Translations under genes and position numbers: made by a program | Assembly: GCF_037042905.1 (NCBI RefSeq) | Contig: NC_087249.1 | Coordinates: 3,534,001-3,598,000, forward strand | Direction: 5' to 3' | DNA length: 64,000 nt | Source of the DNA: Lytechinus pictus | Lineage: Eukaryota | In this document: piece after piece, positions 30,901-64,000 of the stretch | How positions within the stretch are numbered: the stretch's first letter is position 1 | Layout: the number at the start of each line of letters is the position of its first letter | Notes under the pieces: model-generated | The model's input: the letters and a program-made list of their open reading frames with translations, nothing else | Database searches by the model: none | What the model was told of the DNA's origin: nothing

Positions 30901-33900
30901 TGAGAAACAGATCAAGGTATGACATGCATTTTCTGGAAATTCTTAAGGACAAAGACATGGAATAAGATCATCTTCTCGCATTTCGCTTGAACTAATATCG
31001 TCGTTACGTGTACCTATATTAATGAATACAACCATCTCAACTTCTCTTTTTATTTTTCGCATATTATCAGTCTCAAAGGAAAATTTACATTTTTCTTCTT
31101 TCAATGTAGGATATCCAAACCAGAGAGTTTAAGAAAGATGAATACATCTTGACCTTAGAGAAAGATTTGGCAACTCTCAATCAGAAGATGGACTTGGATT
31201 CACCCTCTGAAGTAGGTGTTAAGGCATCAATAATGATGATGATTAATAATGAATATGGTGTTGGTTTGAATAATGACAATACAAAATTCTCCCCCCCATC
31301 CTACTAATTTATACCCAGTTCTTTTGTGTCGGGAAAATCAATTTAAAAAAGTCATTTGGAAAAAAATTACAAGCAAAGTTTAATCAGCTTTTAGTACAAA
31401 ATGTTAGGTAATATTATAAAGAACACAAAAAAAGATGATTACAACTATTGCATTAATATTTTTAGTGTAAACCAAAGACAAAAAAAGAAGGTTTCAAAAA
31501 TAAGTGTTCGGACATCNNNNNNNNNNNNNNNNNNNNNNNNNNNNNNNNNNNNNNNNNNNNNNNNNNNNNNNNNNNNNNNNNNNNNNNNNNNNNNNNNNNN
31601 NNNNNNNNNNNNNNNNNNNNNNNNNNNNNNNNNNNNNNNNNNNNNNNNNNNNNNNNNNNNNNNNNNNNNNNNNNNNNNNNNNNNNNNNNNNNNNNNNNNN
31701 NNNNNNNNNNNNNNNNNNNNNNNNNNNNNNNNNNNNNNNNNNNNNNNNNNNNNNNNNNNNNNNNNNNNNNNNNNNNNNNNNNNNNNNNNNNNNNNNNNNN
31801 NNNNNNNNNNNNNNNNNNNNNNNNNNNNNNNNNNNNNNNNNNNNNNNNNNNNNNNNNNNNNNNNNNNNNNNNNNNNNNNNNNNNNNNNNNNNNNNNNNNN
31901 NNNNNNNNNNNNNNNNNNNNNNNNNNNNNNNNNNNNNNNNNNNNNNNNNNNNNNNNNNNNNNNNNNNNNNNNNNNNNNNNNNNNNNNNNNNNNNNNNNNN
32001 NNNNNNNNNNNNNNNNNNNNNNNNNNNNNNNNNNNNNNNNNNNNNNNNNNNNNNNNNNNNNNNNNNNNNNNNNNNNNNNNNNNNNNNNNNNNNNNNNNNN
32101 NNNNNNNNNNNNNNNNNNNNNNNNNNNNNNNNNNNNNNNNNNNNNNNNNNNNNNNNNNNNNNNNNNNNNNNNNNNNNNNNNNNNNNNNNNNNNNNNNNNN
32201 NNNNNNNNNNNNNNNNNNNNNNNNNNNNNNNNNNNNNNNNNNNNNNNNNNNNNNNNNNNNNNNNNNNNNNNNNNNNNNNNNNNNNNNNNNNNNNNNNNNN
32301 NNNNNNNNNNNNNNNNNNNNNNNNNNNNNNNNNNNNNNNNNNNNNNNNNNNNNTATTATTCAATACGATTAGTAATGAAAATAAGAAAATAATAATAACT
32401 GTAATAATAAAATGGAGGAGATGATGATAATGATGCTTATCAATGACACTGGCGATAGTGATGCTGTTGCTACTGCTTCTGATGACGATGATAATGATGA
32501 CAATGATGGTGATAATAATTTTAAGATAAAATCCTGCCTTAAATCCTTAGGATGACTTCAGGACATCGAAGGCTAACCAGAATGCCCTGAAGCTGCAAAA
32601 GAAAGCATTTGACCAAGAACTTAAGGTAAATATATGTACAATGCGATACAATACAATACAATACAATACAATATAATGACCTCAATCCTTATAAATTGCA
32701 TCTACGCCTATGATTATTTGAACTTGTTGAGGAAGGTTTGTTATAATTAATTACATTTGCTCCAGTGTGTTCACAGGAAATAGCCTGAAACCTTTTACCT
32801 GACATATTGGCGTTCATGGGGACTTGGGGCCATGGCTCCACCGAAAAAAAAACTTTCACGAGAAAAGAAAAGGGAAATAGTGGAACATCATTCTATTTTT
32901 TTAATATTATGTCAAAACCTATCCTAAAATTACATTTTCGTACTAATTTTTTTTGGCTTCATTACCAAACTGACCCGATAGATATATCACTTCTTTTTAC
33001 CCCTCTTCAGAATATTCGTTCTAATGGACAGGAAAGAGATTACTATGTCTTGAAGTTGGAGCAGGATATTGAAAACATGCAGAAAGAGAAAGATGAGCTC
33101 TATCAAGAGATACAGGCAAGGCGTTTTTTGTATCATAAATCAAAAGTACATGATACAATATGTAAGTTTACTAGATATAAATTACAAAAGTGAGCAAAGC
33201 AAATTGCACAGTAAAACACGAACAATTAATTTAGCTGATATCGGCGTCCCATGAGGTGGTGGGGCAAGGCGGCGACCGCTCCCAATGACTATTAAAGTAG
33301 TGAAAAAAGGATGAGAAATGGAAGAAAGAAGAAGGAAGAGTACAAAAACAGAGTTATGGCCATGTAACTAAACAATATCCCTATATGATCTACAGGAGAA
33401 AATATGACGTCACCTTAAGGCTGTCTTGCCCCGCTATCAAATTATCGTGGCGCCGCTGAATGCAGCAATGCCAAAAAGCATATGAGCCAAAAAGAATGTC
33501 AATGATATACTCATGATACTAGTCATTTGTTTTCCAGAACTCGTTTTGGAAAGAACCCAAGATCAACGATCTCGAGGATAAACTGAATCAAGACATTGAA
33601 GACCTGAAGGAACAGAAGATAGAACTGGAGCTAAAGTTAAAGGTATTCAGATCTTGGTGGGAAAAAAGATGAATGGACAATGCATCTGGTTAAAGAAAAG
33701 TTAAAACCCTGAATTTCAGGATGTGAAAAAATAAATGATTTACTATAGTTTACAGAAAATTATATAAACATGGTCATAACAGAAATAATTGCAGTGAAGA
33801 AACTAACGACAGTAGTAGTGTAGTAGAAGTAGTAGTTTTGGTAGTAGTTATATTGGTAGTAGTAGTATTAGTTGTAAGAAGTAGTAGAAGTAGTTGTAGT

Positions 33901-53145: not shown

Positions 53146-56100
53146 TTATAAAACCAAACAAGTTGAAGATTTCTTGTTCCTTTTCTTTTCCGGAGAGGGA
53201 GACGGGGTTTTGTCAAGAGGTTTATTGTTCTCTTCTTTTCTTGGTTTGTTAATGTCAGGTGTGGTCTGGGGTCCATCGTCACATGCTGGTGACGTCATAT
53301 TCTCCTGTCCCGTGTCTGGAAAAGGGGAAATAACTCAATCAATTAAAAATAACAAAAAACACAATTTTTTTCATCACTATGACACGAAATCTGAGGTTTT
53401 AATCCCTACCAGATTTATGTAGATCAGTCTATCTTACATATCAGATTTGACTTAATCCATGTACCAAAAAATGCGAACAAATTACAATAATAGGCCTAAT
53501 GATTGTGATGGTAATGCCAACGGTATTGGTGATGATGATGATGATGATGATGACGACGATGGTTATGATGATGGCAATGATAATATCTATGGAAGTAAAT
53601 GGATGACGCCACACTAATCAAGGAGAGGGGGACGGGGACGGAACAACAGACCTCCTCTCCCCTAAGCAATTGGATCACTTTTTTCATCTATTCGTCAGTG
53701 ATAATTCAATTCAATTCAATTCAATTCATTTTATTGTCATAATGATGTGATAGTAATCAAGCGTGATAAATGATAACTGAAAGATTTGAACCTTACCTTT
53801 GCCTCCATCACCAATCCCTGGCAGCTCTGGCGTCTCGGTCTCAGCAGGTCTTTGTGGTTTGTTGTTCATATTATCCTGATCCTCAAGAACCTCAACCCCA
53901 AGGGTCGGCTCAGCATGTTCCTTGATCTTCTCCACCAGTTCTTCGAACTTCTCATCATCAAAGTTGGCCACAGTGGTCTCGTTAGTAAAGTCAATGTAGA
54001 GGAGCTGTGTGAAGGTCATACTCATTGGTCCTTCCGGGGGCCAGGTCATTTCTTCAAGAAGCAGGGGAATGATGGGTTTACGAAGTGCATCAGAAAGACT
54101 GATCTCCCGTCTGCAGTTCGCAGAGAGGGCGTACTTTGATGTCACACATGAAACCACAACCTGAAACAGTTAAAAGTCGAAGAAAATTTAAAACTGATAT
54201 CCTCGGAAACGGTATCATAAACTGAACTGTCAGTTTCATAAGACAAACAGAAAACCCGAAACAAAATGTTCACATACAACAATAAATCATAAAATTAGAC
54301 ATATTATGACACATTTACATCGGATTCATTTAAATCGATTGTTGGCCTGTAACTGGTTAGTGATACATACTTTTTGAATTTTGGATGATTTATATAGACT
54401 GCTTATAAGAACTCTTGCTTTCAACCAAGAATGTAAACCCTTGAATTGGTTGCTGCAATCAAGATCGAGTATTGTTAAAGCCGCCTGCTCATTTAAAGTG
54501 ACTAGATCATTTGGGGTTAGTACTTAGCCTTACACTTTCAAGGTTGAGCAAAGAACAAGTTGTAAACAATGACGAATGCCATACATACGTCCATTTCATT
54601 CAGAACAGATTAGCTTTGAAAGAAAAAAAAAATCTATGAAATATACTAAATTTCACTCTCCGTGTTCTAGATTAAAAACTATCTCACCTTTGCATTTCTT
54701 ACACCTTTATCAATCTTGGAGTAGAGTGGATCCCCACCACCCATTTGATTGATGTCTAACCAACAGTGGTACCCTAGATCAGTGAGACGAGAGAACAATC
54801 TCTGTATTTGTGGTTGCTTGTCCCATTGTTAAGAGATGAATACGGTTGGGGGATCCACAGATTCCTGGGATGAAATAAACAAGAGATAATTTCAGCAAAT
54901 CATAGGTCAAGTAAAATTAAAAATAGGCTTGACGTGAAGAGAATCGCAGGATTGTAGATGAATAATACATAAGCATTGTTGAAAGGAGAGTAGAAAACTA
55001 GAATATAATATCAAAGGACACAGAAAACGGCAATTGTAATATTTGGAGCTCGTTAAGTGGCATCAGTGCATAACATTTGAGATTAAAAGCAGCTCCAAAC
55101 ACGTGAATGAAAACTAGATTGTAGGCCAATCATAAGGGCTCATTTGACACTGAGGGTTGATCCAATGTTTTTGGAAATAGAAAGTTGAACTTTGTCATTT
55201 ACCGTAGTTTGATTTTGCTGAACACCAGGTATGTTCTTTGTGTCTTCCGATACCTTTTTCACCGTGGCTGGTTTGTCTTCTACCTGAGGAATCCAATTAC
55301 GGTACTCTAAGTAGAAAAAAGGATGTAATATCATATTTTCGTTTTGACAAATAAAATATTAAAGCTCCGGGTCTGGAATAAAATCACATTGATACTGAAT
55401 TAATCATATGTGCTTAATTTTAGTATACCATGCATACATAACGATGTCTGCAAACAAATCTCAAACATTTTTCATATTTTCCCCGGTGGATTTAAGTGCC
55501 ATTATCCTCTTAAATGTGACACTCAGAAAAGTATGAAGGTCACCTCCGGGAGATATGCTAACCTTTTTTTACGCTGTGTGATTTTGTAGCCATTTAACAA
55601 CTTCTATTCAAAATCGTATACATTTGAAATGTTTATTTTATATTTTGAGATGACAGACTTCAGCATTCTTCTCACCGTCTTACCTTCAGATATCATACTC
55701 TCCTCCGGATTTGCGTGGTAAGAAATCTGTCCGAGAAGCTCCGAAAACTTCGGATCTTCCCAGAACTTCTCACCCCTGACGTATTCCTTGTCGTTGTAAA
55801 ACTGTATGTAGAGAAGCTGAGCAAACAGCATACTCATTGCGCCCTCAGGTGGCCACTTGGTGTGATCTATGAGGACGGGGATGATAGGTTTGTTTAACAG
55901 GTTGGCAAGATTAACCTAGAAGATGAAGGAAAGAAGAATACTGTTAGAAAATTGGTTATATGACCTGGCCTATTAGGTAGACTGGAGCTGCTGCGTACAA
56001 CATGTAAAAGACTTTGGTGTCTATTGGAAATGTTAGATGGCTTACTTATTCCGCATTATTCTGTTTCGTAGGCCGAACACCATTGCATTACTATTATGAA

Positions 56101-59100
56101 TTTTAAATGTATTTTGGTCTTAGAAAATTAAAATTGTACATACAAATATTTTGTTAGAATAAACATATATATATATAAATATAATTTAGATGAATATTGA
56201 GGAAAGTTTATTCTGTGCAATAACTACACGAGCTACAACCTACAAAACTAGCACGTGAAGGACTGTGCTCCAAACATTATCATCAACATGTACATACTTT
56301 TATCATCCATGTTCAATAGCGACTAAATGCTTAATGACTTCTATTTATATGATTTATCATTACCAAACTGTATAGCTATACCAGCTGAAAATCGATATAG
56401 AATTAGCATTGCATTGGATGTAAATTCTCATGACTGAATAAAAATAGTTTTCACAAGATGTGATAAAAGAATTGTGAAAAGGGTTATAATGCTTTAAAGC
56501 TCTTTCAGAATTAAGATGTTCCCCCAAAAGGAAAGATTTCGACACCGAATTATGAAATAAATCTCAATACCTCCTTGTTGCAGTTTTCCGAGTTCGAGTA
56601 TTTTTCCGTCACCATACAGAGTACCACTTTGGATGATCTCATGCCCTGGTTGATCTTAGCGAATAACTGATCTCCTCCACCCATCTGACCAATGTCCATC
56701 CAGCAGGGAAACCCGGCCATCTCAAGATGCTTTCTGATGGCCTTCACCTCGGGCTGGTGGTCCCACTGATAGCTCAGGAATACTGTTGGAGGTATTCCAG
56801 AATCGTCCGAAGGGGCTTGAGGTACGAGCATTTCTAATGTAATAAAAAGAAAACGTTGTTGCCTTGTAGTTATGTAGGTGTTGATATCAGCTATCTTTCT
56901 ATTAAGCGGCTCTCGTTACCAACCATCATGACCATGCGGCTAAAATTATGTCAAACTCGGGCAAACTAATGTTCGAATAATTAGAGCGTAGTAGTCAATT
57001 AACAGGAAATTAACCAATGAGAACCATGTACCCAATTAACTAGACCATGGATCCTAACTAGACTGCATGGTAAATCTGGTTCGTGACCAGATAATGTTCT
57101 ACTGGTGGCAATATATTTAAGAAGATGATTATTAAAGAAGTTTGGGGTTAAAGTTTGCTTTGGATAATTTCCAAGGTAGAAAATCATGCACTAGGAAGTA
57201 TTTCGTGCATATGTATTCCTAACACGAAAACGAAACTTGAATCAAAATTATGTACCTGCTTCTTCTAGAGATTGCGTGATTATTTCTGCTGCATCAGTTC
57301 TTCCCATATCCTCTAGCGCACCAAGAATGGCATAGGTAGCGTCACTACTCTTGTGAGTTGTGTACCATTCGGCTAGGATGGCCATGGTAGGGTCTGGTGA
57401 TAGGGCCCAGTTACGGATGTCTTCACCCGAGTAGCCGAGACGAACTGCCAAGAATCGCCAGTCATGTTCGTGTTCGGGGTTCAACAGCTTTGATACGTCA
57501 CGCGACCATTTAGGCGCGTTAGTTATCGTCTACAAAAGGCAAAAGTTGTAGAAAACTTATCTATTAAAAAAAATCACAAATGGTTACAGGACGCAATGAA
57601 AAATATGAGCTCTTTCTGTTGGTTTGGTCATATACATTAGTTTTGATAAGAATGATTTGATTCAACATCGAAATCGTATCATGTACAGGAATGACAGTGA
57701 AGTCGCAAAGACACAAGCTATCCTTTTGATGTCAACATGCCAATATTACACGGATTGTCTCCATTGCAAACCTATGCTTTCCAACTTACAAAACAAGAGG
57801 ATGCCATTTTATCCTATCCCACGTACAAAAAGGGGCGTAAAGTTTTATGTAGAGGTACCATGGCAATGATATCTTATTCAAGGAAATAAAAGTCGGTTTG
57901 GCGGGTTCAAATCTGATGAACTATGTATTTCACAATCTTTCCAAAGCCCCCTTTTACCTTATGGTCGATCTCTTCGACCTTTTCGACCGTCTCATCGACG
58001 ACTTCTTCTAACTCATCCAGTCTCTGGCCCTGCTCATTGACGTCTTTCTTGACGTTCAAAATCTCGTCACCCTGTTCTGTCACAGTCTCGTCAATTCTCG
58101 TTATGTCGTTTTCTGTGTTCGTCACGCGAGAATCCAAGTTATCAATATCTTCCTGCTGCTCGGCCACGTCTTTGCTGAGACTTTGCAAGCTAAAAAAGTG
58201 TAAAATTTTTTTTTTAGTCGTTTCAAGTTCAATCTACGAAAGCCGTGGAAAGAAAATATACTGTCTCGATAATTATTGGCGTGCTACAAATACTTAGATT
58301 TCATTTCCAACATGATACTGTGCTTTCCATTCTCCTCACACGTTGCTTGTTGTGGAAACTGTATTGTGATTATATTCAAATGCAGATACTGATGATAATA
58401 GTGATAATGTTGATGGGGGAATTTAAAGTTATGATAGCGTTTACGAATAACAATAACTCCACAAATTAAGGTAGATTTAAACATAAATGCCAAATGTGGC
58501 AATATGACAAAGCGACCTCATGCAGAATCAAGCAAAATGATAACCGAATTGTGTGTCTGTATACAGGACTGAAATTGTGTATTTAATCATACATCATTAT
58601 CATAACCAAATCAATTATATTCTATAACTATGTTTTGCTTAATTTTTTTTTTATACCTTACCAAAACATTTTCTTCCCAATTTCACCCGAAGATCATTTA
58701 GGATTTACCTTCTGTCTTCCAAGAAATCGATCAAGGATTGGACCAGGTCTGGAACACCCATCTGCTGACATGTCTTTAGTTTCTCTAGTTGTGGTCGATA
58801 AACGGCTAGACATTCCTTATAAGCCATGCCAACCCGCTTTGCCTCCATCAGTATTACAGAGATCCACATAGGATCTATCGTCTTCACCTTGTCAAAGAGG
58901 ATCTTTAGACACCTTGTAGCTTCTTTCTGTGGGAAAGAACAAAGGATTTGACATAGTGATACCGACAAGGATAACAACATAGGTCTGTAGGCCTTCTATC
59001 CTGCTAATGGTCATGGGGGAGCGGGCCTTCGCGCGTGCGGGGCTGAAAAATGTGGAACTCTCTTCCACAGGGTTTAAAAACTTAGACATCAGCAACCACC

Positions 59101-59617
59101 TTCAGGGACATCCTGAAGATGTACCTGTAATATAATGTATAAGGTTTTTTGGACAGACAACCATCTATGTATGAAGGCTATCCTTGTATAGGTCCAATTT
59201 GCTTTGTACTTTTTCCCTTTCTGTATTTTTCTCTAAAGCGCCTTCAGCATCTAAATAAGATTGAAAGTGCGCTTTACAAATTCTATGTATTATTATTATT
59301 ATCATCATCTCCCCAGTACCTTATTTCACTTATCAAAAGTTATACCCCTTCAAGATCTTTACGTTCCTCCTTTTCCAATTCTCTTGTTACCCCCAAAATT
59401 TCCAAAACCTGGGGTGAAAGATCATTTGTTTACTCATCCTCTAAGCTATGGAATAGCCTCCCTCAAAACATCAAACAATGCTTGACTTCTGAAACTTTTA
59501 AACATTACCTCAAAACATTTCTGTTCAATTCTTCTTAATTTCTTTTATAATTTCCTAAAAAGCGCCTTGAGCAATCTACAGAGTGGATTTGGCGCGATAT
59601 AAGTCTAATTATTATTA

Positions 59618-59691
<74 letters not shown>

Positions 59692-60717
59692 AGACCGGAC
59701 CCATATCCCAAACTTGTCACCGAACTTGTAAAGTATGAACGACGTCTCTTACCCAACACCATCATATTTTCGGCTACGTCTTAATGACCATAAATGAAGG
59801 ATAGATCTCTGATCGTTTTCTTTAGAGGTAGTGCCTTAGGTAATGTGTTTGATAATTACCTCGCTGGTGCAACCGACGCTTGCAATGATAGTACATGCAG
59901 AAGACACCGAGAAAGCCGACAGTTCCCATGCTTTCACACATTTATCTATGTGTTCGACAAATTTGATGGCATATTCACGAGAGATATCGGCGAGTGCCAG
60001 AAAACAGAGGGTCGCAAGGGTTGGATCACACAGGTCCTCCATCATGAGATCGATGTGAGAGACCAGAGCCTGCAGAAAAATTATTCAGAATCAAAGGGTT
60101 TTATTCAAAGAATTACATATAGACGAGAAGGAGCAATTAAACCTTAAAAATGAATGCTCATTGGTACTTTCTATAGTCTGGAAATGAAGTCACATTGGTA
60201 CGTTCTATTTCTGTGCAAGGTGGAAAATGTCTGAGTGGATTTGATAAAGGGGGCGGATGCCATCCCTTCTCCCCTTTCTACACTCATAGCCGGATAGGGG
60301 AGTCTGCCCATATTAATTAGAGCTATATCGGAGAACATACAAGTAATTATCCGTTACTCTTTGAGTCTTCTTTTCTCTGCCTGTATGAAAAATTCCTGGG
60401 AAAAATTCTAAGACCCCTCCAATTACATTTAACGTTATTAAGTAAAAACCGGTGAAAAGGAAATTTTGACTTCTTCTTTTCCATCAGTATTTCAATAATG
60501 GAAGGCAAGGCTACAAAATCATACCTCGGGATTTTGTTAAGCAACTTCATCCAAGAGAAGGTACATATAGGTCTTGTCATCATGACCCATGTCTTCCATC
60601 TTTTCTGCAAGTTTGTCCATTCGCGATAAAATCACTTCCGGTTTGTTCTTATAAATTCCAGTTAAAGCACCTATACGAATATATTGCAAAGAAATATATT
60701 AAAGCAATTAAGAATTT

Positions 60718-60748
<31 letters not shown>

Positions 60749-63700
60749 AATGCCAATACAGTATTCCAATACAGTATTAGTATTACTAGTATTACTTATA
60801 TGGCATAAGAAACAACCCTCACCCACATACCCATAAAAGCACCTACAGTGCTGTGAAGCCTTAATAACCAGAGACTGATCAGAACGTACAATAGCAACAG
60901 GGATCTCCGTCAGTGGAGAAAATGCCAGTCAGATGGCGAATGGAGAATGCAGAAATACATCCAATAACTATCATACAGAACCCCTAAGAAAAAAAGATAA
61001 TAATAATAATGATAATAATGATAAAAGAAAATTACGAAAGACATATTCCATATCCATGAAAAATACCTACTGCAAATGTGTGTGTCTTCACATTTGTTGC
61101 TCAAGTAGGCCTCCACTATGGCGTCACCATATGCGACAAGGATATCACCGTTTTCCCCAAGCGCTCCTAAGGTATTACCCGCTAATTCCTCTAAGTCTCT
61201 GACGTCACATGTGAGAAGTTTTAAAACACTTGGAAGGAGATCCTTGTATTTATTCACCTTGTCAACGTCCTAAATCGGAGATAGATATCATATCACTTTA
61301 TTGTTGCCTCAGAAAATCAGCCACTTAACTATTTCACTCTTTAAATAAAACATGAAAGGACATGAAAGAAAAATGTACATAGAGAACTCTGACTTGGTGA
61401 AATCAGGGTTAGACCTACAAAATAAAAAATACTGTAAAGGAAGAGAGTTATATTATTTAGGTAGCAATCACGCTATATTGAATTTAAGGCAGCGATATTT
61501 TGCATCTTTTCCAATCCAATTTAGGCAAGATATATTTAATTTCAATATTCACGAGTAGTATAAGAAGTCATGGCTAAAGAATCATACCTGCAGTATATAA
61601 TCAGTGATAATTGTGCTTATTATATCTCCATGGACTGAGAGAGGTGTCTCATCGCCCTCAAGCTCTTGCTCCAGACAGTATTCCAAAATGCTCTTTAATT
61701 GACTCACACAAGATTTCCTGTGATAAACAACAATAATTATTTTCATTTTGTCGAACACAAGTAATTGAAAACAAAGAACTGCTGAAAATTAATGGGGTAC
61801 CGTAGAATTAACTTGCAGTACTTTCACTATAAGCTTCCAATCTTATTCATGAGAAAATAAGATTACTTCTTGAGTAGTTTGAAAATACTGTGGTCTATCG
61901 AAAAGGTCATGGCTCCCAGGAGAATGAGACTAAAAAAGGTTTCATCGAAGTATGTTTCCTAGATCAACTCACCAAAAACAAATACCAAAATCAATTTCAA
62001 TACACTTCCCTGTATAAGATATGGGAAAGTCGATTAGGTAAAAAAAAATGCATTCAATGTATAATGATCCATGTATCTTTCTTGGTTGGACAATGTTTAA
62101 TCTGACGTTGCCCAAAGGATTGCACAGTAGCTGGTTACACAGAATATCAAAACTGCCAAATGTATAATCCGTTGCCCAAAATTGTCGTCAAAATGTATTA
62201 AAGCATATATCATGCTTTTACCTTGCCATTCGTAATATTTCAAGTAAATCAGTATTATCACTACTACTATTCCTGATATCTTACCCAGCATTTTCTAGCA
62301 TGGCACAAGCTGGCATGGCTTGTGCCAGAGCCTTATGGTCCAGGTTGTGTTCAAAGTCGACGTCTTCACGGCGTAACCATTTGAAAAATATTTCCAGGAC
62401 ATCAGGAATAAGCTTTTCAGTACCCTGTAACAGAGGGAAATGAAATGTTGGGTACCAGTGTTGGGGACCATGGTTGGTGATGACGTCAATATAGTAACGA
62501 TGGTGATTCGTGAAGAACGAAGTGAGTTTTTGCACCGAGACGCAGAACATATCCTATAACACATCTTAATGCATTGATAATGCAAGTGCATTTTTAAATA
62601 ATATCGCTAGCACTTGTCTGAGGGCGTTCATTCAACCTTACCAAGAATGCATTATTGAGGGCCAAACTTTAATTGAATGATGCACAACTTTAATATGGAA
62701 ATTATGTCTTATTAAAAATGTGTTTCAATATAAATCAGTGGCATTACATGAAATAAATATATATAATTTTTTTTATAATCATGAATCACTGAAGTTTAAG
62801 TTAGTCAACTGCAAAAAAAGAGAGGAAATTTCGTTTGATAAAACTGTGATATGCCACAAGCTATATTGTATCACCGTATAGAACGTACAATATACACACC
62901 AGAAACATGAAATGGTTTGCGTAAAAAAAGTTGCAGAACAAAAAGCACGTATCATGCAGGGGTTTCATGGGAAATTTTTACTCATTATTGCGTAAAATTA
63001 ACATAGTATTAGGTTTTTTTTTTACCAAAACGAACATGCATTCAATTTAATCCAAATTTTTGTAAGCCTTTCTTATAATGAAATGGAATGAAATATGGTG
63101 GGGAGTGGTGGAAGGTATTTTAAATATATAAACTGTACCTCCCATGACATCTCATTTGACTCAGCAATGGCAAGAGCAACAACGAGATGCATGTCTGAAC
63201 TGCTCTGGAGACATGACGAAAGCAACCGAACGAATGACCCCTGAACTTTCTTGATAATCTTGTCGCGACTAAAATGCAATAAGGAAGATAAAAGTGAAGA
63301 ATAAAAATGTTATCGGTTAAAACTGAATGTGAAGACATTTTCTAATATTTTGAATAAGTTACGAAATTTTCCCATTTTGACTTAATGAAAAAAAATGACG
63401 ATAATTTTCACAAGGTCAGAAGATTTCACCACTACCACCACCATTTCTGCACAAAAACTCCTTGTTTCAAAGCAATCTTGAGCTCACTATTACCCTGTGT
63501 CCAAGACAACGCAATACAGAAAGTTATGTATAGAGACGTGATTGAGGTTCAATTTTTCAAGCTTTACTTAAGGCCACCATCACGATAAAAATCTTTAGGA
63601 TAAGGTAAAATTTGAAACGCTATCATATCATATCTAATTTGCATATTCACATAATGTGTCGTAACAATAAATCATACGCTGTATCGTATTGCAGTATCAT

Positions 63701-64000
63701 ATATATTTAGAGTCGACTGACATCTGCTTATATCTTCAACAACAACAAAACAAACCTTAAGCGCCATTATCATGATTATCCAGAAAAAACCCCAGACTCT
63801 CATAAAAAAAATCATTTAATAAACAGTCTCTAGGTGATGGGTATTTGTTGCGCCTATGGTAACCATGAGTCGTCTAATAGGTCCGTGTCTATATCAGTCC
63901 ATTTACTCACCTACAAGCGTTGATGATATCTGAAACTGTATCTTTGAGTGCGCTGCCAGAATCACCCCATGACACATGCTTCGCCTCGTCAGACTCCTTC
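53146..64000 (-). CDS. VEPH1/Melted-like ARM + coiled-coil + Death + TIR + TIR + CaaX protein; 5' end lies beyond the window; two in-frame TAA codons (null allele, pseudogene, sequencing error or readthrough)
   Basis: Exons, all GT-AG with matching phases: >64000-63911, 63268-63139, 62424 (or 62553)-62285, 61717-61588, 61269-61071, 60670-60525, 60069-59860, 58926-58709, 58189-57958, 57529-57256, 56833-56571, 55915-55684, 55306-55203, 54864-54688, 54160-53797, 53315-53146. About 1,025 codons are visible. Death domain: [11 protein letters not shown]...PTMAILAEW...[16 protein letters not shown]1: VFLSYQWD...[12 protein letters not shown]...[13 protein letters not shown]2: VFIS*QWD...[12 protein letters not shown]...[10 protein letters not shown]. 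The protein ends [13 protein letters not shown]. Confidence 0.88.
58985..59301 (+). mobile_element. Older L2-type LINE 3' fragment
   Basis: Degenerate [19 protein letters not shown]....[11 protein letters not shown], then AAAGCGCCTTCAGCAT...GTGCGCTTTACAAAT and an (ATT)n tail. Confidence 0.7.
59302..59690 (+). mobile_element. Young L2-type LINE 3' fragment with long (ATT)n tail
   Basis: Reads [21 protein letters not shown]...[12 protein letters not shown]...[10 protein letters not shown], then the 3' motif and ~85 bp of ATT repeat. Near-identical to 17385-17675. Confidence 0.88.

Follow-up and report, generated by a model that had tools for sequence, protein, structure and literature searches.

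VEPH1/Melted is a growth-signalling adaptor with the partners TSC1, FoxO, Warts and ALK5, and SARM1 combines an ARM domain with two SAM domains, hydrolyses NAD+ through its TIR domain and carries a mitochondrial targeting sequence. The PH domain of VEPH1 binds phosphoinositides, and VEPH1 has been described as single-copy and without known paralogue (PMC6734325). MyD88-like TIR domains are defined by an RDxxPG box 2 (PMC7075850). Here we describe a sea-urchin gene of a Lytechinus-type genome, located in a 64-kb stretch of DNA (the window). Its protein starts with an alpha-solenoid (residues 1-545), continues with a coiled coil, a Death domain and a pair of TIR_2 domains and terminates in a polybasic CaaX end. 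The best overall explanation, to which we assign a probability of about 0.65, is that the gene belongs to an ancient family in which a Melted-type solenoid is combined with coiled coil, Death, TIR, TIR and CaaX.

Gene structure and premature stop codons

The gene is located on the minus strand, is expressed and has about 16 exons, the middle ones of which lie within the window (Table 1); residues 1-122 of the protein fall outside it. The encoded protein of 1147 amino acids shows about 99% identity to the database protein P0023 of the same species. Over the 995 positions compared, tblastn and the splice model show 8 differences between the window copy and P0023, two of them nonsense and six conservative. 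Assembled RNA contigs support the exon chain from 63268-63139 to the exon starting at 57529 with eight canonical GT-AG joints, and the spliced frame is unbroken. The exon at 63911..63999 has a GT donor after 63911, and a loose end of an RNA contig at 63271 extends into it.

The sequence-only reading had placed a VEPH1-like region with six peptide blocks at 58709-62553. All six blocks were recovered on the minus strand, in the order given and in RNA-supported exons, one of them being split by the 59860/58926 splice into 10 and 14 residues. The interval does contain solenoid exons, but its outer limit has to be moved: 62553-62425 is an open stretch within an intron, and upstream of 62424 the solenoid runs on through 63268-63139 and 63999-63911 past the window edge. 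The VEPH1-like portion spans approximately 63228-58714.

Table 1. Coding features of the gene in the window, in the order of transcription. Residues are numbered as in P0023.
Feature	Position	Strand	Evidence
Exon for residues 123-151 and positions 1-2 of codon 152; N-terminal solenoid extension absent from VEPH1	63911..63999	-	tblastn with P0023, 100%
Solenoid exon, residues 152-195; VEPH1/Melted-like from residue 166 at 63228	63139..63268	-	RNA joint 62423/63138, translation, Foldseek
Solenoid exon, residues 196-242	62285..62424	-	RNA joints; AG acceptor with 16/20 pyrimidine tract
Solenoid exon with 13-residue (249-261) and 15-residue (271-285) blocks	61588..61717	-	RNA joints, translation
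Solenoid exon with 16-residue block (326-341)	61071..61269	-	RNA joints, translation
Solenoid exon with 12-residue block (354-365) and first in-frame TAA (60539-60537)	60525..60670	-	RNA joints on either side of the stop
Solenoid exon, 3' end with first 10 residues of block 461-484	59860..60069	-	RNA joints, translation
Final solenoid exon with 14 residues of block 461-484, VILMEAK (494-500) and IDFLEDR	58709..58926	-	RNA joints
Coiled-coil exon, residues 543-620	57958..58189	-	RNA joints; weak Pfam matches of coiled-coil type only
Death-domain exon, residues 621-711	57256..57529	-	Pfam PF00531, 2.8e-14 on the exon
TIR domain 1, exons 56833-56571 and 55915-55684; Glu799 at 56573-56571	55684..56833	-	Pfam TIR_2; HMMER alignment to SARM1 TIR
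Exon linking both TIR domains	55203..55306	-	tblastn, 100% identity; splice model
TIR domain 2, exons 54864-54688 and 54160-53797; Glu989 at 54106-54104; second in-frame TAA (54831-54829)	53797..54864	-	tblastn, splice model
Final coding exon: disordered tail, polybasic stretch, CaaX box, stop codon	53146..53315	-	tblastn, splice model

Both nonsense differences create TAA codons inside RNA-defined exons. At the first of these positions P0023 has Lys396 and the L. variegatus orthologue AAA; at the second they have Tyr923 and TAC. Since there are two such codons, the haplotype in the window may be a null allele. We nevertheless regard it as unlikely that the gene is dead in this copy by truncation within the solenoid, which would leave no downstream part made from this haplotype, or, alternatively, that both stops are sequence errors in an intact gene. 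Transcripts of the locus are correctly spliced, the remaining six differences are conservative, there are no frameshifts and every splice site is intact. Furthermore, the two stops share the same octamer, CTTAACAA, a coincidence that would be unusual for mutations of independent origin and may indicate an artefact. In the RNA contigs, the exon holding the first stop has one mismatch that is not listed, and that stop may therefore be absent from them.

Relationship of the solenoid to VEPH1/Melted

No Pfam model covers the solenoid region. The Foldseek query was an AlphaFold prediction for the solenoid with a pLDDT of 92.6 and a pTM of 0.86. In the Swiss-Prot part of the AlphaFold DB, ranks 1-7 were occupied by all seven VEPH1/Melted entries, i.e., VEPH1 of human, zebrafish, mouse and rat, fly Melted and two Caenorhabditis melted homologues, with E-values of 1e-9 to 7e-8. 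Query residues 166-541 were aligned with VEPH1 residues 3-369, and the alignment stops at position 58714 in the exon with which phmmer recovered the family. The first other match was coatomer gamma (7.6e-6, 10% identity, rmsd 11 A), and SARM1 was absent from the best 30 Swiss-Prot matches. Among 2.3 million AlphaFold DB clusters, the best six look Melted/VEPH1-like (three named melted, two PH-domain proteins, one unnamed), each aligned from its own N-terminus. The top row of an ESM Atlas search was an 830-residue chordate PH-domain cluster aligned to residues 165-544. VEPH1/Melted thus scored clearly better than generic ARM/HEAT proteins in the Foldseek structure searches, in agreement with the homology proposed by the sequence-only reading.

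Against the family profile, the VEPH1 strings as quoted in that reading scored 12.4 bits, compared to -17.1 +/- 5.7 bits for 300 within-block shuffles, and every block was aligned at the expected position. A word-indexed profile search with the family did not find VEPH1. Judged from the predicted structure, the resemblance to VEPH1 exceeds chance, because its Foldseek E-values are 2-4 orders of magnitude ahead of those of generic solenoids. With structure and 15-20% identity as the only basis for homology, we consider that the likeness probably reflects common descent. As a scale of divergence, urchin and mollusc solenoids within the family are only 16-20% identical, a level equal to that of the identity to VEPH1.

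It appears rather improbable that the N-terminal domain is a generic adaptin-like ARM/HEAT solenoid for which VEPH1 ranks first due to similar size and curvature, by convergence or very deep superfamily kinship. Searched against solved structures, the family profile matched AP-3 delta, AP-1/AP-2 beta and transportin (9e-5 to 5e-3), and the true kinship of the domain may therefore be with adaptin trunks in general. Several members have sub-threshold Pfam matches to Adaptin_N and INTS7_N, the protein-language-model neighbours are generic HEAT families only, and by TM-score alone, a shape-only measure, VEPH1 has no lead over coatomer, AP-2 alpha and plakoglobin. In a shape-only ESM Atlas search, the model of an Aplysia member (pLDDT 92.1) likewise matched adaptins, coatomer and importin, and VEPH1 was not among the rows. 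However, the seven Swiss-Prot VEPH1/Melted proteins, which come from vertebrates, fly and nematodes, have E-values 2-4 orders of magnitude better than any other solenoid. Their identity is 15-19% rather than 10-13%, and the rmsd is 4.0-6.6 A in five of the seven (8.4-9.3 A in the other two) versus at least 11 A for other solenoids. Their alignment extends from the first residues of VEPH1 to the end of both solenoids, whereas the best solved solenoid reaches only 2.8e-5 in a Foldseek search of the PDB, in which every match was generic ARM/HEAT. In addition, the collinear blocks, although compared with strings taken from the sequence-only reading rather than from a database sequence, fall on conserved positions of the family profile.

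An orthologue of VEPH1 was rejected as identity of the protein, which has no PH domain and belongs to a multi-copy family. With the Melted-type solenoid as preferred reading, the 'orphan' VEPH1 domain gains its first likely relatives. If common descent applies, this solenoid would be a portable module used in two membrane-tethered contexts, with a PH domain in VEPH1 and with coiled coil, Death domain, two TIR domains and a prenyl anchor here.

Death and TIR domains and distribution of the family

Downstream of the solenoid, Pfam detected a Death domain (6.5e-13) and a pair of TIR_2 domains (2.5e-48) but no PH domain, as the sequence-only reading had described. That description can be extended by about 165 additional N-terminal solenoid residues, the coiled coil and the conserved polybasic CaaX end. 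The latter is of the geranylgeranyl type, a predicted lipid anchor, and 105 of 120 listed family members terminate in a CaaX box. The Death-TIR-TIR half was matched by 238 proteins at E<=1e-20, and the 120 listed of these include members from echinoderms, hemichordates, amphioxus, molluscs, annelids and one nemertean. The N-terminal halves of these members match the solenoid of the window. By sequence comparison, this is an ancient, invertebrate and unstudied family with a common layout across phyla. The proposal that a Melted ARM module was shuffled onto a TIR protein thus holds with respect to the likeness, but not as a recent event: the fusion is ancient because all these phyla share the same architecture. 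The further idea of that reading, a role as guard or decoy or as a bridge from growth signalling to TIR activity, is speculative.

The nearest solved relative of TIR1 is the SARM1 TIR, and bacterial TIRs are also among the nearest. Glu799 aligns in HMMER with the glutamate of SARM1 HKEIV, which is the catalytic E642. Glu799 is kept in 120 of 120 listed members, and Glu989 in 119 of 120; apart from this one exception, SxNCxxE is conserved without change in TIR1 and TIR2 of the listed members. By sequence, the TIRs are SARM1-like rather than MyD88-like and have a putative catalytic glutamate.

It is distinctly improbable that the protein is a non-enzymatic MyD88-type scaffold whose TIRs dock on Toll-like receptors, whose Death domain recruits IRAK-type kinases and whose solenoid only adds a binding surface: the order Death-then-TIR, the name 'MyD88-like protein L1' of the S. 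purpuratus member P0020, the classification of the Aplysia members LOC101850562 and LOC101855561 as MyD88-like with an Armadillo-type fold (PMC9334734) and the fact that a conserved glutamate is no proof of catalysis are in its favour, but the Death domain is closest to p75NTR and NRADD among solved structures (1.3e-7; MyD88 E = 0.3), the TIR_2 matches lead to SARM1 and bacterial TIRs, the RDxxPG box 2 is absent from both TIR domains, and there are two TIRs with SxNCxxE, not one. Canonical MyD88 identity was rejected on the p75NTR/NRADD-like Death domain, the missing box 2 and the presence of two TIRs.

For the family with a Melted-type solenoid, we tentatively propose a SARM1-like logic. The fast-evolving solenoid could serve in regulation, perhaps by autoinhibition, or in partner binding. 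Oligomerisation at the membrane via coiled coil and Death domain would place the two TIR domains, which are strongly conserved, next to each other. Because each TIR keeps the glutamate that SARM1 uses for catalysis, the TIR domains might consume NAD+ by hydrolysis or cyclisation, or start downstream signalling.

Comparison with known systems

The solenoid finds its best structural match in the N-terminal part of VEPH1/Melted, an armadillo-like solenoid about 370 residues long (human Q14D04, Drosophila Q9VS24; E = 1e-9). VEPH1/Melted likewise has a C-terminal membrane-targeting device, a PH domain there and a predicted polybasic CaaX end here. In contrast to VEPH1, which has been described as single-copy, the urchin family is multi-copy, and its protein lacks the PH domain, has about 165 extra N-terminal solenoid residues and continues after the solenoid with coiled coil, Death domain and two TIRs.

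By analogy with SARM1, the urchin protein begins with helical repeats of presumed regulatory function, which are followed by a putative oligomerisation module, and closes with TIR of the TIR_2 type. However, its solenoid is not of the SARM1 type, as judged from the best 30 Foldseek matches, it has a coiled coil and a Death domain in place of two SAM domains, two TIR domains, and a predicted prenyl anchor instead of a mitochondrial targeting sequence. With MyD88 it shares a Death domain followed by TIR, and S. purpuratus A0A9E8IDW3 bears the name 'MyD88-like', but the urchin protein adds the 545-residue solenoid, the coiled coil and the CaaX end. The trunks of adaptins and coatomer (AP-1/2/3 large subunits, COPI gamma) rank next among the structural and sequence-profile matches and cover residues 24-544. 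Compared to VEPH1, their Foldseek E-values are weaker by 2-4 orders of magnitude, with about 10% identity and an rmsd of at least 11 A, and the urchin protein differs from them in having neither appendage domains nor a coat-complex context.

Gene model, transcripts and in-frame stops

The gene lies in an AT-rich region of the window (~36% G+C). Minus-strand open stretches between 64000 and 53100 encode the six peptide blocks quoted in an earlier sequence-only reading, followed by a coiled coil, a Death domain (PF00531, 2.8e-14) and TIR_2 matches. The gene model was first drawn by inspection of splice sites and then checked with RNA evidence, which consisted of assembled contigs and raw reads of two samples that carry the same species label, and covered positions 57400-63399. 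RNA contigs confirmed eight exon joints with canonical GT-AG ends. The frame stayed unbroken on joining, and all six blocks were found in this RNA-supported frame in the order in which they had been quoted. The finished model has 16 exons within the window and the C-terminus CLVL. Exon boundaries lie after residues 195, 285, 400, and 470 and inside codons 152, 242, 352, and 542 (numbering of P0023, a 1147-residue database protein of the same species). P0023 matches the window exon by exon over residues 123-1147 with eight differences, and a Lytechinus variegatus protein, which is a 90% cluster mate of P0023, differs from it by 5%. The gene extends past the window end at 64000, residues 1-122 being encoded beyond it.

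The sequence-only reading had placed the VEPH1-like N-terminal region at 58709-62553. The downstream exons of this extent are RNA-backed, but 62553-62425 is an intron that happens to be open. Position 62553 is also not the start of the domain, as the helical domain runs upstream via 63268-63139 and 63999-63911 and off the window.

Features of the gene and its surroundings in the window
Feature	Position	Strand	Evidence or remark
Exon	63268-63139	minus	RNA contigs
Exon	62424-62285	minus	RNA contigs
Exon	61717-61588	minus	RNA contigs
Exon	61269-61071	minus	RNA contigs
Exon	60670-60525	minus	RNA contigs
Exon	60069-59860	minus	RNA contigs
Exon	58926-58709	minus	RNA contigs
Exon	58189-57958	minus	RNA contigs
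Exon	57529 onwards	minus	RNA contigs
First in-frame TAA	60539-60537	minus	Lys396 in P0023
Second in-frame TAA	54831-54829	minus	Tyr923 in P0023
Polybasic stretch and CaaX box	53146-53190	minus	close the protein
Stretch of high RNA depth	59350-59575		intronic
Long ATT/AAT-type microsatellite	~59600-59700		next to the stretch of high RNA depth
Run of 837 N	31517-32353		

Within the intron between the exons 60069-59860 and 58926-58709, RNA depth rose locally to ~460-615 in the contigs, compared to ~2-18 on exons. This stretch showed many loose RNA ends and several fixed differences and resembles one copy of a repeat whose transcripts are abundant.

Of the eight amino-acid differences between this copy and P0023, two are in-frame TAA codons within exons, at sites that read AAA and TAC in the L. 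variegatus orthologue. These stops could reflect a real null haplotype; the ends of the exon around the first one are fixed by RNA contigs. They could also be sequence errors or another artefact: each of the two stops is contained in the octamer CTTAACAA, and the RNA contigs show one mismatch in the first-stop exon, its position within the exon being unspecified.

The N-terminal solenoid and its relatives

The structure of residues 1-545 was predicted and formed one continuous helical solenoid (pLDDT 92.6, pTM 0.86). In a Foldseek search of the Swiss-Prot part of the AlphaFold DB, ranks 1-7 were occupied by human, zebrafish, mouse and rat VEPH1, Drosophila Melted and two Caenorhabditis melted homologues, with E-values of 1e-9 to 7e-8, 15-19% identity and 339-419 aligned residues; query residues 166-541 were placed on VEPH1 3-369. 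The rmsd was 4.0-6.6 Å in five of these seven matches and 8.4-9.3 Å in the other two. From rank 8 onward, coatomer gamma, importins, PP2A-A and RAP1GDS1 followed with E-values of 7.6e-6 or worse, identities of 10-13% and rmsd values of at least 11 Å. VEPH1/Melted thus scored better than generic ARM/HEAT proteins in the structure search, the opposite of the outcome that had been named as speaking against homology. A search of 2.3 million AlphaFold DB clusters gave a similar picture: the best six aligned from the first residues of the target (E 2.5e-9 to 1.2e-7) and look Melted/VEPH1-like, three being named melted, two being PH-domain proteins and one being unnamed. The ESM Atlas, searched by shape only, gave as its first row a chordate PH-domain cluster of 830 residues that covered residues 165-544 of the query. 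Among solved structures in the PDB, the best match reached 2.8e-5 and all matches were generic ARM/HEAT proteins.

Sequence comparison within the family fits homology, since the solenoids of urchin and mollusc members are only 16-20% identical, which is the same level as the identity to VEPH1. The VEPH1 blocks quoted in the sequence-only reading scored 12.4 bits against the family profile (not the window sequence), compared to -17.1 ± 5.7 bits for within-block shuffles, and fell at the expected profile positions; as these strings were hand-picked rather than drawn from a database entry, they are a lead only. The predicted structure supports a Melted/VEPH1-type solenoid joined to Death-TIR-TIR. 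The latter part had been proposed to stand in place of the PH domain, and this agrees with the domain content: a Death domain and two TIR_2 domains were found, and a PH domain was absent from P0023 and the scanned members.

Alternatively, the domain and VEPH1 may both simply be adaptin-like solenoids that happen to be about equal in size. When matches are ranked only by TM-score, VEPH1 (0.53-0.54) has no lead over plakoglobin, AP-2 alpha and coatomer, all three of which also cover the N-terminal extension of the solenoid. The model of the Aplysia protein LOC101855561 (pLDDT 92.1), when searched by shape only in the ESM Atlas, retrieved adaptins, coatomer, INTS7 and importin and gave no VEPH1 row, which we counted as evidence against the VEPH1 link. 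Likewise, the family profile matched AP-3 delta and AP-1/2 beta best among solved structures. A word-indexed profile search with an alignment of 36 N-terminal halves returned only two sea-urchin fragments and no VEPH1, a result of little weight as just 8000 candidates were scored. For the solenoid, Pfam searches of the exons, the N-terminal halves and P0023 1-545 assigned no family and gave only sub-threshold matches of the Adaptin_N, INTS7_N and importin types. Protein-language-model look-ups with the whole solenoid and with residues 166-545 led to generic HEAT families such as MMS19 and GCN1. PF24161, present in precomputed annotations, was considered as a model of the solenoid and rejected, because it also occurs in P0047, a member without solenoid. 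Weighing the structure matches against the TM-score, Aplysia and profile results, we consider it about 70% likely that the solenoid and VEPH1 derive from a specific shared ancestor.

Family distribution, Death and TIR domains and membrane anchor

When 1.84 billion representative sequences were searched by phmmer with the last solenoid exon, only six proteins came up, two of them full-length, with 870 residues (Diadema) and 1161 residues (Antedon). The Death-TIR-TIR half of the latter, used as the next query, gave 238 proteins at E ≤ 1e-20; the 120 listed of these belong to echinoderms, hemichordates, amphioxus, gastropods, bivalves, annelids and a nemertean. The N-terminal halves of other members matched P0023 1-545 with E-values from 1e-230 (urchins) to 1e-7 (oysters). 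In mollusc and annelid members (P0056, P0060, P0075, P0092, and others), a further 300-350 N-terminal residues precede the shared solenoid. The window protein has the full family order of solenoid, coiled coil, Death domain, two TIR_2 domains and polybasic CaaX end. A recent domain shuffle in this genome, one form of the origin proposed from the sequence, is ruled out, because the same architecture is common to several phyla; the fusion of solenoid and Death-TIR-TIR is ancient and family-wide.

Several paralogues are present per genome, with four in Antedon and several in Strongylocentrotus purpuratus, Diadema and Branchiostoma. They often lie on one contig or have adjacent locus numbers, as exemplified by the four Antedon genes, LOC118413458/LOC118413459 in Branchiostoma, LOC132747531 to LOC132747533 in Ruditapes, and DgyrCDS8667, 8668, 8670, and 8671 in Dimorphilus, which suggests repeated tandem duplication. 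Oyster 'MyD88-like' genes have been reported to stand in tandem clusters (PMC4346834), and in the Aplysia immunome LOC101850562 and LOC101855561 (P0054 and P0056 in our set) are listed as MyD88-like with an additional Armadillo-type fold (PMC9334734). A UniProt member from S. purpuratus carries the name 'MyD88-like protein L1'. Our literature search found no paper tying TIR or Death-domain proteins to VEPH1. As members are catalogued as immune genes and a study of the VEPH1 link was not found, the gene family is already known, though uncharacterized, and what appears new is the assignment of its solenoid to the VEPH1 type.

The two halves of the protein differ in conservation. Among 35 members, the solenoid (P0023 1-545) is 16-61% identical to the window protein, compared to 52-89% for residues 616-1065; between urchins and molluscs, the Death-TIR-TIR half is 52-55% identical. 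A fast solenoid combined with a slow Death-TIR-TIR part is the pattern that would be expected of a variable sensor on a constrained output.

Pfam assigned P0023 a Death domain (6.5e-13) and two TIR_2 domains (2.5e-48), with coiled-coil noise at 545-620 and no family on 1-545. Among solved domains, those of p75NTR and NRADD were nearest to the Death domain (1.3e-7), MyD88 reaching E = 0.3. For TIR1, the TIR of SARM1 and a TIR protein from Paracoccus were the nearest solved relatives; for TIR2, it was chain 4lzp_B of a Brucella TIR protein. In the HMMER alignment, NKEVNLA of the window protein was placed on HKEIVTA of SARM1, so that Glu799 occupies the position of the HKEIV glutamate, the catalytic E642 of SARM1. 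This glutamate forms part of an S-x-N-C-x-x-E motif in 120 of the 120 listed members for TIR1 (Glu799) and in 119 of 120 for TIR2 (Glu989). At the sequence level, the protein has a TIR with a SARM1-type, putatively catalytic glutamate. An RDxxPG box 2, which marks MyD88-, TLR- and IL-1R-type TIRs (PMC7075850), was absent from P0023 including both TIRs and present in only two of 121 fetched proteins. A polybasic CaaX end, typically KKS[KS]xCxxL and mostly with a final leucine, was found in 105 of 120 listed members across phyla, so that a predicted prenyl anchor in the membrane seems to be one of the traits that define the family.

Possible function and comparison with known systems

Taken together, the data describe a putatively membrane-anchored protein in which a rapidly diverging helical domain and two oligomerization modules are combined with a tandem TIR output that evolves slowly. 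In a possible mechanism, the solenoid would sense or bind a partner and restrain the TIRs, the coiled coil and the Death domain would drive assembly of the protein at the membrane, and the TIRs would either consume NAD+ or serve to nucleate signalling. To our knowledge, no animal TIR protein other than SARM1 is established as an NAD+ consumer. The conserved TIR pair with its SARM1-type glutamate, together with the helical regulatory domain, the oligomerization modules and the lipid anchor, makes this family, which spans at least six phyla, is often multi-copy and has so far figured only among the 'MyD88-like' or 'uncharacterized' entries of immune-gene catalogues, a candidate second animal TIR enzyme system.

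It is also conceivable, though in our estimate quite improbable, that the solenoid of Melted/VEPH1 is an old and portable regulatory module, that VEPH1 and the window family go back to a single membrane-tethered ancestor, and that the solenoid retains the same class of partners, directly coupling growth or nutrient signalling to a second NAD+-consuming TIR family that, besides SARM1, is widespread in animals. The solenoid might then bind TSC1, FoxO, Warts/Hippo or TGF-beta receptor components, and the protein might guard those pathways or serve as a metabolic death switch. A guard, decoy or growth-signalling role of the family is speculation.

A canonical MyD88 is rejected on the lack of RDxxPG; the Death domain, recognized as such by Pfam, lies nearer to p75NTR and NRADD than to MyD88. 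The likeness to VEPH1/Melted concerns the solenoid and is confined to predicted structure. VEPH1/Melted has a C-terminal PH domain, whereas the window protein has a coiled coil, a Death domain, two TIRs and a CaaX end. VEPH1 is described as single-copy with a paralogue in no species, and its armadillo-like domain as without known relatives (PMC6734325); the window family, in contrast, is multi-copy and does not behave as a single-copy orthologue. For this orphan domain, an invertebrate family with the same solenoid would supply evolutionary context and a second functional setting for asking what the VEPH1 domain binds. The C-terminal PH domain of VEPH1/Melted localizes the proteins to the plasma membrane (PMC6734325), which is paralleled by the C-terminal lipid anchor of the window family. 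With respect to SARM1, orthology is ruled out, as the solenoid is not SARM1-type: SARM1 was absent from the best 30 Foldseek matches in Swiss-Prot. Pfam detected no SAM domain in P0023, and the coiled coil and the Death domain sit where SARM1 has its tandem SAM domains. The window family shows the same logic as SARM1, built from different parts.
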